DNA from: Diplonema japonicum
Taxonomy: Eukaryota > Protista > Euglenozoa: Diplonemea
Reading direction: 5' to 3'
DNA: 64,000 nt
NCBI GenBank assembly: GCA_964019335.1
Contig: OZ025742.1
Span: 124,001-188,000 of the forward strand
How positions within the stretch are numbered: position 1 is the stretch's first letter; each line of letters starts with the position of its first letter. The notes below the pieces were generated by a model. The model saw only the letters and a list, made by a program, of their open reading frames with translations. It was not told the origin of the DNA and ran no database searches. A program made the position numbers and the translations under genes. Below are positions 3,137-49,609 of the stretch, one piece after another.

Positions 3137-3270
3137 GGTGGTGGGGATAACATGAAAATATAAGAAGTACATCAGATGTGTTGTTCGCTGTTGACCTCCT
3201 CGTCGGTCATCACCGGTAGCGCCCGAGTGGAAGAACGTAACGCAGATGCTCAGGGTGACGAACAGGCAGC
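3137..3270 (+). ncRNA. HDV-like self-cleaving ribozyme (family A)
   Basis: P1 GGUGGUG 3137-43/CAUCACC 3208-14; P2 GCUGUUG 3187-93/CAG(G)CAGC 3263-70; P3 ACC/GGU; L3 UCCUCGUC; P1.1 GG 3215-16; P4 3220-28/3248-57; J4/2 A-C3259-GAA. Confidence 0.8.
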
Positions 3271-3461
3271 AAACTGCACGAGCGCAGAATCTTGGTTACC
3301 CGGGACGCCCCGGCTAGGGTTGAGCACCGCACGCATTAAGGACACGACGCGGAACGCAGAAGAAGCTACAACTCGGCCGCGGTGCGCCCCCTGTAATCAA
3401 GTAGGTAGTTCGTGCTTCATTTGCACGCTTACCGCCACCTAGTGTTGCAATCAAAGCCCCA
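3137..3461 (+). mobile_element. Ribozyme-headed SINE-like retroposon, family A, full-length copy 1
   Basis: Near-identical to 48059-48383 and 22199-22445 and flanked by T-runs. The 3' stem-loop (taggtag...cgtgc/gcacg...ccaccta) is followed by aatcaaagcccca and poly(T). Confidence 0.85.
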
Positions 3462-7759: not shown

Positions 7760-7799
7760 AGGCGTCCTGCCACATACCGCAGGTACCCTTAAATGTCTC
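7760..7799 (+). mobile_element. 40-bp T-tailed micro-retroposon (copy 1 of 3)
   Basis: aggcgtcctgccacataccgcaggtacccttaaatgtctc followed by poly(T); identical at 39872-39911 and 61015-61054 (-). Confidence 0.8.
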
Positions 7800-8028
7800 T
7801 TTTTTTTTTTTTTTTTTTTTTCCCTGCGAAGGCCCTTAATTGCTGTGCAGGCAGTGCCATCCGGTAATACGATATGATTTTCTTCTTCTTTTTTTTTTTT
7901 TTTTTTTTTTTTTTGTCTTTATTTTGTGTTTCGTTGTCTCTTGGAGGGGAGCAAAAAAAAAAAAAAAAAAAAAAAAAAGAATACACCTGAGGGAGGAAAA
8001 AGAGGAAGAAAAAAAAAAAGAAAAGGAA

Positions 8029-12100: not shown

Positions 12101-12978
12101 GAGAATAACAACGTACATGGTAACCAAATAACTTTTTTCCACTCAAGTCTGTAAGCAGAATTTCCACCACTGTTTACGGTAACCCACAACTTTTTTTTCC
12201 ACTCAAATGGTTTTTTTGTAAAAAGATTTTCCACTCTCCACGGTAACCTATTTTTATTTCCACTAAACCATGTAAGTAAGAACTTTTTTCCACCGTCCAC
12301 GGTAACCTAAAACTTTTTTTCCAACGTCCACGGTGGAGGATTGTGCACTTGGGAAAAACGTATAGGCACAGCCAGAGCTCGAAAAAGACACCAAGAATTT
12401 CTCCTGGAAGTTGGCAAGGGCGATTTCCAAAGACGATATAAAGCCAAAGCCGAGGTATCTGGCGTCTGATGTACTTCTCCACCCCTCGCCCCCCTGCCTG
12501 TGAAGGATATGCCAAGGATGACCTCAAGCCCCCTGTTGTCACGAAGTCACAGATAGGCCAGCAAAGAGGAAGCGAAGTGAGAGAGAAGGGGAAAATAAAT
12601 GCAGCAACTTGTAAAAACCTTTATTACTCAACTGTTGCGCCAGCCACAATCATTCCTCGAAGTGCTGTCCCGGTGTAGTCCCAGCCTTCAGGGTAGTCAC
12701 CCATTTCTCTTAAAAGGTCTCTTTTCCTTTTCTTTTGCTATGACATCATGTTTTGCCCCCCTCGCTACATTTCGGACTAAACCCAATGAGGCATAAAGAT
12801 GTCGGAGGTTACCGTGGACGGTGGAAAAAAAGTTAGTGGTTGCATAAGGGAAATTGTTGGTGGTTACAGTAAAAAGTGGAAAAAAAGTTGTGGTTACCGT
12901 GGATGGTGGAAAAAAAGTTGGAGGTTTATGGCAATGGTGGAAAAAAGTTATTTGGTTACCGTGTACGCTGTTTTTCCC
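12101..12978. mobile_element. Non-autonomous Mutator-like (MULE) element
   Basis: ~42-bp imperfect TIRs (gagaataacaacgtacatggtaaccaaataacttttttccac / ...gttatttggttaccgtgtacgctgtttttccc) with tandem subrepeats and a 9-bp TSD aaaaaactt. A second copy lies at 19491-20185. Confidence 0.85.
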
Positions 12979-19298: not shown

Positions 19299-20376
19299 AT
19301 GCCACTGCCCTTGCAACTGCTTAAAAATGGGATCAAGCATCCTCTGAATATAGAAATGAAGGGGGGAGACATGTACAATGGGTACCTCAAGAGCTGTGAC
19401 GACTGGATGAATGTTCACTTAATTGACGTAACACTTACTACTGCGGTATGTAGGGGGGTGGGGGGAGGGATAAAAATAAAAAATAAAAAAGGGAAAAACA
19501 ACTTACACGGTAACCTACAACTTTTTTTCCACTTTTTACTGTAACCACCAACAATTTCCCTTATGCAACCACTAACTTTTTTTCCACCGTCATTGGGTTT
19601 AGTCCGAAATGTAGCGAGGGGGGCAAAACATGATGTCATAGCAAAAGAAAAGGAAAAGAGACATTTTAAGAGAAATAGGTACAACCGGGACAGCACGACT
19701 GTGGCGCAGCGGTTGAGTAATAAAGGTTTTTACAAGTTGCTGCATTTATTTTCCCCTTCTCTCTCACTTCGCTTCCTCTTTGCTGGCCTATCTGTGACTT
19801 CGTGACAACAGGGGGCTTGAGGTCATCCTTGGCATATCCTTCACAGGCAGGGGGGCGAGGGGTGGAGAAGTACATCAGACGCCAGATACCTCGGCTTTGG
19901 CTTTATATCGTCTTTGGAAATCGCCCTTGCCAACTTCCAGGAGAAATTCTTGGTGTCTTTTTCGAGCCCTGGTTGTGCCTATACGTTTTTCCCAAGTGCA
20001 CACACACCTCCACCGTGGACGTTGGAAAAAAAAGTTCTTACTTACATGGTTTAGTGGAAATAAAAATAGTGGAAAATTTTTTACAAAAAAAAACCATTTG
20101 AGTGGGGAAAAAAAAAGTTGTGGGTTACCGTAAACAGTGTTGAGTGGAAAAAAGTTATTTGGTTACCATGTACGTTGTTATTCTCAAAAAAAAAAAAATT
20201 AGGACGGAGATCGTTTCTTCAAGATGAAAGAATGCTTCATAAGGGGAAACACGGTAAAATGCATTCGTCTACCAGACGTCGTGCTTGCTGTGGCAGAAGA
20301 AGCTCAACAAAAGCTAAAGAAGAACAAACGGGGGAAGAAAAGGCCACGCGATGAGGATGACAGCAAGAAAAAATAA
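19299..20376 (+). CDS. LSM4: U6 snRNA-associated Sm-like protein LSm4; join(19299..19445,20203..20376)
   Basis: MPLPLQLLK...YNGYLKSCDDWMNVHL (Sm1) spliced to DGDRFFKMKECFIRGNTVKCIRLPD (Sm2) across a 757-nt intron. Confidence 0.92.
19491..20185. mobile_element. MULE-like element copy 2, within the LSm4 intron
   Basis: Inverted, internally deleted copy of 12101-12978 with both termini retained. Confidence 0.85.
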
Positions 20377-37604: not shown

Positions 37605-37605
<1 letters not shown>

Positions 37606-37659
37606 ATAAGTAGAGACAAGGGGGACGTTCCAAAACAGGAACCTCCTTTATCTCATCTC
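37605..37659 (+). mobile_element. 55-bp 3'-terminal fragment of the LINE at 44577-46317
   Basis: Identical to 46263-46317 and embedded in poly(T). Confidence 0.9.
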
Positions 37660-38089
37660 TTTTTTTTTTTTTTTTTTTTTTTTTTGAATGAGAAACCAAT
37701 ATGTTGTTCTTTATTTTTTTTGGGGGGGGGTAGATTACTGCGGTACAAACTAAACACAAATTACAAAAAAAAAAAAAAAAAAAACATGAAAAGAGATTAG
37801 TGATCTTTGGATTTATCTTGTATTCTTTTTGATTTTTTTTTTCTTACCGTTCCCCCGTCACGACGCTAACGTGGAAGGTTCCTTAAGACCATTCACTTAT
37901 TGCTATTGAAAAAAAAAAGGGGGGGGCAGCAGCATTCCACGGGGGGGTGCGTCAAGACGCGGGTGAGTGGAAACAACCTTTTTTTTTTTTCTTCTCACTT
38001 TTCTTTCCTAGATTTTACCTTTAACACACAACAAAAAAAAGGGGAGAAGAAGGCATCCGTTGCTTCTTTTCTTTCTTTCTCTTTTTTTG

Positions 38090-38165
38090 GGGGACCAATG
38101 TTTCCAACCTCCCTGTGGTGGTTCCTGGTAATTGTGGTTTGGAGAAACACAAGCGAAAGGGAAAC
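38090..38165 (+). ncRNA. Compact HDV-like self-cleaving ribozyme (family B)
   Basis: P1 GGGGACC 38090-96/GGUUCCU 38120-26 (G1-U wobble); P2 GUUUCC 38100-05/GGAAAC 38160-65; P3 ACC/GGU; L3 UCCCUGU; GG 38127-28; P4 UUGUG/CACAA; J4/2 G-C38154-GAA. Confidence 0.85.
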
Positions 38166-38537
38166 TCTCGTTCTAAAGCCGTACACGTGGGGATACCTGG
38201 ACGGGGGTGGAGAGCCCACCCTACGCGTGGCGCCAGTTAGCATCGCCCTCAACGGAGAGTCCCTTATCCCATTACATCGAACAAGGAGGTGGCTTCACCA
38301 GGTCAGGCAAGTAGCCTCCCCGCGGCATCGTGCCAGTGAAGCAAGCCTCCCACAACTCTCCAGTTGGTGTTTAATTGCTTCTGTGGCCCCTCTCCCTATT
38401 TCAATTTCCAAGCTTTCTTTACCTCTCCACTTTTACTTTCTACGGGACCACAGGGGACTTGGGAGGCTTCGGGGCGAAGTTTCACAAGGGTGGCCGCTGT
38501 GTCACATACTGCATGGCACCACTAAAATCGAGACAAC
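38090..38537 (+). mobile_element. Ribozyme-headed SINE-like retroposon, family B
   Basis: Complex island bounded by T-runs. It starts at ribozyme P1 and ends aaaatcgagacaac plus poly(T); single copy in the window. Confidence 0.65.
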
Positions 38538-38973
38538 TTTTTTTTTTTTTTTTTTTTTTTTTCTTCCCTCCCGAATCGGGAAAATCACAAGACACCGTTT
38601 GCTGCAAGCAGTTCTTTCCCACACACTTCAAAAAAAGTGGTAGGTTGGTAATTCACTTGTTGCCCAAAAAAAAAAAGTCGAAAATTTCACTAATGGATTT
38701 TTTTTTTTGGGTATTTTTGGTTCCCTGAGAGGCTGAGCAAGGGGGGGACTACTTTAGACATTTTATAAAATAGTTTCAACTCTAAAGGGTATTTTCGACT
38801 TTTTTTTTGGGTTATTAGGTGGTTTTAAACAGCTTTTTTTTCTTTTTTTTTTTTTTTTTTTCTTCCCTTGGCGCTGCCCTCTCCAGCAAACAATTGCACA
38901 TGACGCAGCGTTTATTCACATTATTATTATTATTATTATTTTTGCCCCCTTTCTCTTATATGTTACTAAATCT

Positions 38974-39871: not shown

Positions 39872-39908
39872 AGGCGTCCTGCCACATACCGCAGGTACCC
39901 TTAAATGT

Positions 39909-39911
<3 letters not shown>
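39872..39911 (+). mobile_element. 40-bp T-tailed micro-retroposon (copy 2)
   Basis: Identical to 7760-7799 and followed by poly(T). Confidence 0.8.
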
Positions 39912-44576: not shown

Positions 44577-46317
44577 GGATGGTCAGACGCAGACGGACAA
44601 CACCAGGGCCAGGGCGGCGGGCGACACGCTACGGAGGCTCGCGACCACTCAGCTCTCTTTCTGGCAGAAAGCGGAAGTCCTGCGAACAACGGTGCTACCC
44701 AGCTGTCTGTATGATGTTGCATTCGCGCCGCCGTCGGAAGGATACCTCAAATCGCTCACATCAACCGCGACATACGCCTTGTGGGGACCGAGGTACAGAA
44801 CAAGATCACCAGCGGCGGTGCTGTCAAACCTGTTCAGCGGACACACACACGACCCAGAGGTAGCAGCGCCCTACAGAGCACTAGCAGCCATATACAGAAC
44901 GAGACGAAAATTGGGAGAGGTGTGGGAGCGGTGCCAGAGACTTGCCAAAGGGTACCAAGACCCGACAAGAACGACACCTTTGGGCCCGATAGGCAACGCG
45001 ATGAAGCGGTGGCTCCCGAAGATCAGCACAAACTGGGGGCAGTTCACCGAAATGCTAGCTGAGAACAAGGACAAATTCGCACATGTAGTGCGAGAAAAGC
45101 TAAGGTCGGGACGTGCGGAACACATACAGGACAGAAGACGCTCGATGGAGGGGTTAGACCGGGGGCGCAGACCCACGCACGAACGACCTGTGGCGAGAGC
45201 TGATGAGACTCGGACCACAAGGAGCAATGGCAGCGAGAGACCTCCGGAGGATCGTGGCGGGAGGGGTTTTCTACACCCACCCAAAGGCGTGGTACCAGGA
45301 CAAAATCACCAGACGGGTACCACCCCCAGAGGGCGAGCAGAGCGAAAGCGAGGACAGCTCGGAAGAGGAAGGGGACGAGACACACGAGCGTGTGAACAAG
45401 AGACCAACAACAGACGAAGTCACATGCGACGCGTGCGGTGCGGAGGAGGACGAGAGCAACATGCTGCGACACGCATTATGGGAATGCAGTGTGGCGAAGG
45501 AGGTGCAACAGAAGGAAGTACATGCAGAAGTAGTGGCCAGCAAGACGGAAATGCCAATCTGCATGCAGCTACATGGAACGCTCCCGCGTGGTCACCGAAC
45601 ACACCAACACCGGCTGAGGAAGACGCAATACTACCTGCTGGAAGTGGTGGCAAAACGGGACCAGCTTCTCCAGGACAAGAGAAAGCTAGAAACGTACACG
45701 ACGCACCCCTGGGAACAGATAACGGAAGGAAACGCTCATGCGCCACCTGAATGGAAGGAGCTGAGGAAGCATGTGAGCGGGAGCCTGATGATGAAGCACG
45801 GTGAAGACATCGTCAAGTGGCTCAAAAAGCTGAAGTGGTACGATGGACCGAGGAAGACGACAGTCACCACAATGGAACTCGTACTAGACTTCGAGAACAC
45901 GCTGGGCGTCGAGCCGATCACGGGGAAGAAGGGTGATCTAGACATGATACAGAAGAAAGCGCGGAGTTTCCACGGCCTCATGGAAAGAATCCAAGAGGGG
46001 TGGGACACAGCACGCATACAGAAGAAGGTCAGAGGCAAGCGGATCTTCCCAGCGGAGAGCCAGAAGAACCACGCGCTTAGAACCATAGGTGCGAAGAAGA
46101 GTCTGGGATGGAACAGAAGGCCAGTTTTTGCATCAGAGAAAACCAAGAAGGACCTTAAGAAACTGGGCAGAAAGTGGCAAGAAGAAAGGGAGGATACTTT
46201 GAGGAAGGCAACACAGCCAAAAAAGAAAGAAAGGCCGAGGCCCCAGAAGGGAGAAAGGGGTAGATAAGTAGAGACAAGGGGGACGTTCCAAAACAGGAAC
46301 CTCCTTTATCTCATCTC
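44577..46317 (+). mobile_element. 5'-truncated non-LTR retrotransposon (RT C-terminal region plus CCHC zinc knuckle), frameshifted
   Basis: VLPSCLY...ALWG (RT thumb-like), then after a frameshift near 45170 LRRIVAGG...CDACG...HALWEC. It ends in a 3' stem-loop abutting T5, with T10 at the 5' junction. Confidence 0.8.
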
Positions 46318-49409: not shown

Positions 49410-49609
49410 NNNNNNNNNNNNNNNNNNNNNNNNNNNNNNNNNNNNNNNNNNNNNNNNNNNNNNNNNNNNNNNNNNNNNNNNNNNNNNNNNNNNNNNNNNN
49501 NNNNNNNNNNNNNNNNNNNNNNNNNNNNNNNNNNNNNNNNNNNNNNNNNNNNNNNNNNNNNNNNNNNNNNNNNNNNNNNNNNNNNNNNNNNNNNNNNNNN
49601 NNNNNNNNN
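49410..49609. other. Assembly gap (200 N)
   Basis: Run of n. Confidence 1.

Follow-up and report, generated by a model that had tools for sequence, protein, structure and literature searches.

Diplonemids rank among the most abundant marine protist groups, and a 64,000-nucleotide (nt) stretch from the genome of one of them, Diplonema japonicum (contig OZ025742.1, positions 124,001 to 188,000; called the window below), raises the question of what the non-coding repeat at window positions 38090-38537 is and how it came to stand there. This repeat, named family B here, ends in ...GAGACAAC with a T-run directly after it, and it is probably a full-length copy of a young, non-autonomous retroposon without long terminal repeats (non-LTR), headed by a self-cleaving ribozyme of the hepatitis delta virus (HDV) type and mobilised into T-runs by a long interspersed nuclear element (LINE). 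The genome note on the D. japonicum YPF1604 assembly (62.30 Mb) mentions neither ribozymes nor transposons (PMC13598402), and the genome paper of D. papillatum lists LINE-type open reading frames (ORFs), mentions no ribozyme and defers the non-coding parts of transposable elements (PMC10161547).

The element measures 448 bp and is followed by 25 T (38538-38562), so that the T-tailed unit of about 450 bp proposed for this locus in a preliminary description, made from the letters of the window, is real and is one copy of a dispersed, T-flanked retroposon. A 451-base query finds at least 40 places with 99-100% identity, and pattern counts over the genome, allowing at most one mismatch, return 149 matches to the terminal 22 nt and 105 to head nt 2-23, the reversed controls giving 0. 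There are about 150 family-B copies over many contigs, about 70% of them full length, which answers the question of copy number raised by the preliminary description. In the 38 full-length copies compared, departures from the consensus amount to about 1.5 substitutions per copy (about 0.3%, with three flank columns removed), and the window copy has one private base, at 38194, where all four sequencing runs read the consensus A. The 3' end is constant (...CGAGACAAC), and T-runs of 1-26 nt stand directly 3' of it in 42 of the 42 copies measured. Nine distinct truncation points occur among 16 tail-only loci, these 5'-truncated copies beginning at element positions 13, 100, 221, 248, 268, 290, 318, 325 or 342 with the 3' end intact; the DNA upstream of three of them codes for host genes (Patched-type and phosphatidylserine synthase, PSS), not for a LINE. 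Heads that lack the canonical tail (C9, C17, C28 and C33) are B copies damaged by mutation, truncation or internal deletion, and no ORF or reverse transcriptase is attached to them. The body of the element resembles nothing beyond the copies of its own family in the DNA compared. A short interspersed nuclear element (SINE) derived from a tRNA was ruled out, as no tRNA is found in the element. A stop-free frame without ATG runs through the whole repeat (37900-38643 on the + strand, 247 codons including the flanks); a coding reading of it was rejected, since it has no Pfam match and indels of lengths not divisible by three occur in some copies, and the frame was taken as chance.

The 5' truncation, the variable target duplications and the homopolymer at the 3' junction point to target-primed reverse transcription in which the RNA had the sense of the + strand. 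The homopolymer is T on the sense strand, and in this the family departs from those described. One truncated copy (L046) is flanked by a clean target duplication of 59 bp, the first bases of which are the T-run of the target (TTTT), whereas most flanks consist of T-runs alone, where duplications cannot be read; among the others, duplications of the form T(n)A (L011, L025, L026) and T(n)G (L015, L016) are found, and L012 is inserted in a (TTTTTA)n array. The 5' junctions of 29 full-length copies mostly show a T-run within a few bases, then 0-6 extra G, an A or a C, and then GGGGACC. In the copy L017 (junction at G000:C18:585108), a partial second copy of the initial 13 nt (GGGGACTAATGTT-A) stands before the full-length element, suggesting that the reverse transcriptase jumped or slipped at the RNA's 5' end.

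The T-run could also be target and not tail, the element ending in ...CAAC and the Ts being a run that a T-run-specific endonuclease has split or duplicated. This is possible, if rather unlikely: L011 has T14 A upstream and a shorter run, T10 A, downstream, the readable duplications mostly comprise T(n) and one further base, and in two copies ...CAAC is followed by a single T and then by T-rich sequence, as expected of a target, but L023, L024 and L041 carry T14-T26 on the 3' side with no 5' T-run, and priming on an A-run needs U at the 3' end of the RNA. The two readings overlap if the U-tract is recopied from the downstream T-run in each round, and both fit one model, in which the RNA runs into the T-run of the source copy and the A-run of the target anneals anywhere on the U-tract.

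At the other end of the element, a complete HDV-like double pseudoknot can be drawn over its first 76 nt (38090-38165, numbered from G1 = 38090), with P1, P1.1, P2, P3 and P4 in the canonical order (Table 1), and these bases are predicted from the fold to be a self-cleaving ribozyme motif. The junction reads T7 (38082-38088), g (38089) and then GGGGACC, so that the head starts 1 nt after a T-run, as had been described, and the features listed at that time (G1-U, ACC-UCCCUGU-GGU, GG, P4 and G-C-GAA) were all recovered by direct reading, the site being also a descriptor match. The wobble pair G38090-U38126 closes P1, and the repeat begins at this same G, 5' of which the cut is predicted. The motif C38154-G-A-A (a cytosine followed by purine-A-A) is kept in five of the five B-lineage heads aligned, and the alignment column next to the candidate catalytic cytosine, about G64 (position 67 of the copy alignment, which begins three flank bases before G1), is altered in one of 38 copies. 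We take C38154 to be the counterpart of C75 of HDV, and the numbering of P1, P3, L3 and G38/G39 presumably coincides with that of the genomic HDV ribozyme.

Could such a fold have arisen by chance on an ordinary repeat? The self-written descriptor, fixed ahead of inspecting the controls, required G1, a 7-bp P1, a 3-bp P3, an L3 of 7-8 nt whose nt 2-3 pair with the two bases following P1, the motif C-N-A-A, and, adjoining P3, a P2 with 5 bp or more. Its sole match on both strands of the window is at 38090. Sixty dinucleotide shuffles of the window gave 48 matches, a rate of 0.8 per window (about 6e-6 for each position and strand), and a single match per window is therefore unremarkable, as is the folding energy of the head. 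The argument rests instead on location, because the G1 of the match is exactly the first base of the repeat, a coincidence with a chance of about 6e-6 per position, and a chance fold is in our judgement extremely improbable.

Within the B lineage, all 26 pairs are standard in the five sequences compared (130 of 130 paired cells), versus 36-62% when the partners are slid. The diverged relative B2 (L092), which was detected solely via its P3-L3-P1 core, has about five helix changes, two in P2 and three in P4 and all to G-U, a count that partly depends on where a 3-nt insertion in P4 is placed in the alignment. Covariation is not visible within family B because the family is too young.

The core is found well beyond family B. 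The pattern ACCTCC-N4-5-GGT-N6-7-GG has 1101 matches in the genome versus 159 for its reversed control, a 7-fold excess, and at least six different P1 3' strands are present among the first 100 of these 1101 places, in agreement with the large genome-wide ribozyme repertoire that the preliminary description had foreseen. In the families compared (Table 1), ACC/UCC.../GGU, GG and C-N-A-A are constant, whereas P1, P2 and P4 change yet stay complementary, the families not being alignable homologues throughout. Most heads of other families begin 0-3 nt after a T-run (L097 and L094 have no visible one in the bases inspected), and one head (L085) is that of a LINE, the sequence downstream of it being 98.8% identical to the 5' part of an element with a reverse transcriptase of 1444 amino acids (aa). 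That families with different helices likewise begin at the G1 of the fold, and that the core exceeds its control 7-fold, also tell against the chance fold; one core with several complementary helix sets at the starts of repeats would be hard to explain without a conserved fold, which does not by itself prove catalysis.

One of these families, A, stands in the same window, at 3137-3461 and from 48060 onward (both on the + strand); a third, degenerate copy with changed P1 and L3 lies at about 60980-60860 (- strand), and all A copies are co-oriented with the local gene cluster. Families A and B share the ACC/UCC.../GGU, GG and CGAA head, the start 0-2 nt after a T-run, the terminal T-run and the co-orientation with genes, whereas the ribozyme of A is 134 nt long as against 76 (with a 43-nt J1/2 and a longer P4) and has G1-C in its main form; no similarity was found between the bodies and tails of the two. 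The preliminary description had taken the helices of B to differ completely from those of A, and this holds for P1, P2 and P4, in sequence and in length, but not for P3, the start of L3, GG and CGAA, which are identical. Its two ribozyme-headed lineages within 64 kb are indeed there, but to call them unrelated or independent was too strong, as P3, L3 and P1.1 are common to B, A and the LINE heads, and B2 and B3 carry the L3 of the LINE head (UCCCAGU). A covariance model derived from B scores strongly on B, B2 and decayed copies, reaches E values of 0.07-3 on other families and does not find family A; since it stays with its own lineage, B is a distinct family at the sequence level. Judged from these comparisons, B may fairly be called a distinct family sharing a core, the common descent of which is neither shown nor excluded.

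L090 (G000:C7:542480-543160, minus strand) consists of the first ~64 nt of a B-type head, without J4/2 and the P2 3' strand, joined to another tail (...CTCGGCCGGTGAGCGCA...AAGAATAG-T(n)) that also precedes the D-type head in L096, and it looks like a chimera made by template switching. A scan of metagenomes for the B-type core pattern gave no B relative, as 10 of the 11 matches look unrelated and come mostly from one bacterial coding gene. The remaining one, L103 (contig Ga0222719_10036300, positions 43-64, - strand), reads ACC-UCCCAGU-GGU-GGUCCCU-GG, and GGGACC, which could serve as its P1 partner, lies about 45 nt farther upstream; this doubtful look-alike, scored at 11.8 bits by the R1 model, is possibly an HDV-like ribozyme from a different organism.

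Several observations weigh against a ribozyme-headed, LINE-mobilised and T-tailed element. Rfam gives no match at the gathering score in the whole window, and its HDV-type models give none at E values up to 10 within 37900-38700; these models are, as far as known, lineage-specific and blind to pseudoknots. The nested minimum free energy (MFE) of the head is no better than that of shuffles (z = +0.86), pseudoknots lying outside that model. The helix changes of the B lineage are six one-sided ones, all to G-U, with no two-sided compensatory change. The substitution density of the head equals that of the body across the copies, which would be expected if copies are dead on arrival and is thus uninformative on function. 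An extra G or A precedes G1 at many 5' junctions, which would also fit an RNA that is capped or otherwise started. The RNA evidence consists of assembled contigs of four runs, from which RNA ends, strand and level are unreadable. DNA alone cannot tell a T-run borne by the RNA from one that is mere target. Finally, an autonomous LINE with the B head or the B tail, the search for which the preliminary description had suggested, was not found among the heads, tails and reverse-transcriptase matches listed.

In the RNA contigs, the repeat exceeds its flanks in depth by a factor of several hundred to a few thousand. One contig of 431 nt, whose run carries the label of a different organism, spans 38090-38509 and has seven further bases at its 5' end, but contig borders are mute on cleavage because repeat contigs break at borders for assembly reasons.

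Part of this evidence would also suit a LINE-mobilised retroposon whose head is not a ribozyme and is instead a relic, an internal promoter or a protein-binding module acting at the DNA level, as proposed for Pr77, the 5' end being set by the start of transcription or by the reverse transcriptase. The extra bases before G1 (one to six G, or A, in many copies), the partial duplication in L017, the lack of an Rfam match and the lack of RNA ends in the contigs agree with this reading, and Pr77 is reported to act as both promoter and ribozyme (PMC3383444). It is nevertheless improbable, since all core features of the fold are intact in the consensus and the same architecture, with other helices, heads at least five further families, mostly 0-3 nt after a T-run; moreover, T(n)A and T(n)G duplications account for part of the supposedly extra bases, among them the extra A of L011, L025 and L026.

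With the ribozyme-headed retroposon as the preferred explanation, the life cycle of family B might run as follows. The element would be promoterless and transcribed within the long same-strand (polycistronic) transcripts of its host, and its first 76 nt would fold as the double pseudoknot and cut just 5' of G38090, giving the RNA an exact 5' end. A 3' hairpin with the loop CACAUAC, and a U-tract transcribed from the T-run that follows the element, would then be bound in trans by the reverse transcriptase of a LINE. This enzyme would nick the A-run opposite a genomic T-run, and the A-run would anneal to the U-tract and prime complementary DNA (cDNA) synthesis, a mirror image of the poly(A) mechanism of L1 and Alu; early stops would leave 5'-truncated copies.

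The 3' hairpin, known from a computed fold (Table 1), is probably the binding site of the reverse transcriptase. The last 49 nt of B resemble a micro-element of ~43 nt with a related loop (ACAUACCG) and look like a diverged copy of it. This micro-element (AGGCG-[A/T]-CCTG-Y-CACATACYGCAGGT... or AGGCG...CACATACYGCAGG...) stands between T-runs at 7760-7800 (+), 39874-39911 (+) and 61050-61007 (-) of the window, and also in L006, L046, L048 and L100. Its 5' end falls at the same base in seven of the eight copies compared, and the genome has at least 267 copies, this being the number for the one 30-mer variant counted.

The LINE that would supply the enzyme was sought among at least 625 candidate reverse transcriptases (PF00078), which fall into at least 10 classes of score and ORF length. 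Among the matches listed, inspected by eye and non-exhaustively, there is no reverse transcriptase within 5 kb downstream of any B head, nor any within 5 kb upstream of any B tail. None of six LINE 3' regions inspected ends in the B tail, and one LINE family ends with A34. This is seen in L082 (G000:C51:120600-123100, minus strand), where at about 700-735 an ORF of the 1444-aa type is followed by a short 3' stretch and then A34; A-tailed and T-tailed LINEs therefore coexist in the D. japonicum genome. One candidate partner, C30, with a CACATAC-type tail 2.6 kb behind a reverse-transcriptase match, proved to be just a 43-nt micro-element. The window itself holds a 5'-truncated LINE with a 3' T-run at 44577-46317 (+), whose tail (...CCTCCTTTATCTCATCTC) forms a hairpin with z = -3.0, and a 55-nt fragment of that tail at 37605-37659 (+); in L005, the T-tail of this LINE directly hosts a family-B copy.

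The orientation of the copies is biased. Stop-free frames of at least 200 aa are confined to the element's strand in 19 loci and to the opposite strand in 0, and between 856 and 49614 of the window every long frame is on the + strand, the element lying among them. This co-orientation is not due to target supply, because the coding strand is about as rich in T-runs as in A-runs (203 and 181 homopolymers of at least 7 nt, respectively, in 49 kb). It could be proposed, as a tentative extension, that family B belongs to a modular system adapted to polycistronic transcription, in which the 5' ribozyme would be interchangeable, a 3' hairpin of ~45 nt with its recopied U-tract would suffice for LINE priming on the A-run of a T-run, insertions would be strictly co-oriented with transcription and the ~43-nt micro-element would be the minimal mobile unit.

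Table 1. Parts of the family-B copy in the window, and helices of other predicted HDV-like heads in the genome (nt, counted from G1)
Feature	Position	Strand	Details
Upstream T7 run and one extra G	38082-38089	+	insertion-site side of 5' junction
Predicted HDV-like ribozyme, 76 nt	38090-38165	+	predicted cut between 38089 and 38090
P1 5' strand GGGGACC	38090-38096	+	partner 38120-38126 GGUUCCU; nt 1-7/31-37, seven pairs including G1-U37 and G4-U34
P2 5' strand GUUUCC	38100-38105	+	partner 38160-38165 GGAAAC; nt 11-16/71-76
P3 ACC/GGU closing L3 UCCCUGU	38107-38119	+	P3 nt 18-20/28-30; L3 nt 21-27
P1.1	C38111, C38112 with G38128, G38127	+	C22, C23 with G39, G38
P4 hairpin, loop GGAG	38132-38152	+	nt 43-51/56-63, eight pairs and one bulged G
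J4/2 GCGAAAG	38153-38159	+	C65 = C38154, candidate catalytic cytosine
Non-coding body	38166-38488	+	no tRNA, Rfam or Pfam match
3' module	38489-38537	+	computed fold: hairpin 38489-38523 with loop CACAUACU, then CUAAAAUCGAGACAAC (A/U-rich)
T25 run	38538-38562	+	tail and/or duplicated target T-run
Family A			P1 GGUGGUG/CAUCACC; P2 GCUGUU/GGCAGC; 134 nt
Family D (L096)			P1 GGGGGC/GCCCCU; P2 CCCGGCGC/GCGCCGGG; 7-bp P4; J4/2 CAGAC
Family E (L097)			P1 GGGGCU/GGCCCU; P2 GCUGGGG/CCCCAGC
Family E (L099)			P1 GGGGCU/GGCCCU; P2 CUGGGGA/UCCCCAG; compared with L097, one U-A pair of P4 replaced by C-G
LINE head (L085)			P1 GGGGUC/GGCCCU

The window also has an extreme load of homopolymers, including G-runs longer than 20 nt. 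The gene cluster switches strand near 50-52 kb, a gap of 200 N lies at 49410-49609, and an inverted repeat of about 550 bp (12342-12891 and 19517-20002) is composed of three blocks (301 nt at 99%, 91 nt and 75 nt), with its arms 6.6-7 kb apart.

If the proposed explanation is true, ribozyme-headed retrotransposition reaches from trypanosomatids and R2 into the diplonemids. For studies of structure and function, the genome would offer natural HDV-like ribozymes in which a single core is combined with many sets of helices. The family would also point to LINE and SINE integration primed on T/A-tracts in the opposite sense to that of L1, in an organism that is culturable, so that this could be tested directly.

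Among known systems, L1 and Alu, which prime on homopolymer tracts, and the microsatellite-targeting LINEs of the R1 clade have a 3' tract that matches the nicked target, duplications that start with the tract, and 5' truncation; family B differs from both in that its tract is T, not A, on the sense strand. L1Tc and NARTc, likewise, carry poly(A) tails and not T-runs. A limited literature search turned up no precedent for a LINE or SINE with T-tails on the sense strand, which is weak evidence of absence. As for the fold, that predicted for B and that of the HDV, CPEB3 and drz-type ribozymes have in common a nested double pseudoknot in which G1-U closes a 7-bp P1 and a C-rich L3 pairs with GG, together with a 3-bp P3 and C-G-A-A in J4/2; the J4/2 of B is longer (6-7 nt as against ~4), and no Rfam model of this fold family matches B.

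HDV-like ribozymes are known at the 5' end of L1Tc/NARTc, of ingi-clade elements and of R2 (PMC3185411, PMC4035085, PMC3414825). The closest parallel is offered by L1Tc/NARTc and ingi/RIME of the trypanosomatids, which, like family B, belong to Euglenozoa with polycistronic transcription; in L1Tc and NARTc, a ~77-nt HDV-like ribozyme forms the first bases of both a LINE and its short derivative and frees the RNA from co-transcripts, and cleavage of ribozymes of this type has been demonstrated in vitro (PMC3185411, PMC4035085), whereas that of the B head is predicted from the fold. The trypanosomatid elements have one conserved Pr77 sequence, while D. japonicum has several heads with different helices; NARTc, moreover, is an internal-deletion copy of L1Tc, whereas no LINE parental to family B came to light. 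R2 and its short, internally deleted derivatives also use a 5' HDV-like ribozyme, which excises the element from the host co-transcript at or near the 5' junction, and have a 3' RNA structure that the R2 protein binds for target-primed reverse transcription, the non-autonomous copies retaining the head and the 3' end (PMC3774820, PMC3414825). R2 is directed to a single site in the 28S rDNA, in contrast to the T-runs used by B throughout the genome. The strategy itself is thus already known from L1Tc/NARTc and R2, and what differs here is the diplonemid lineage, the plurality of heads built on one core, and the T-run on the sense strand together with insertion into T-runs.
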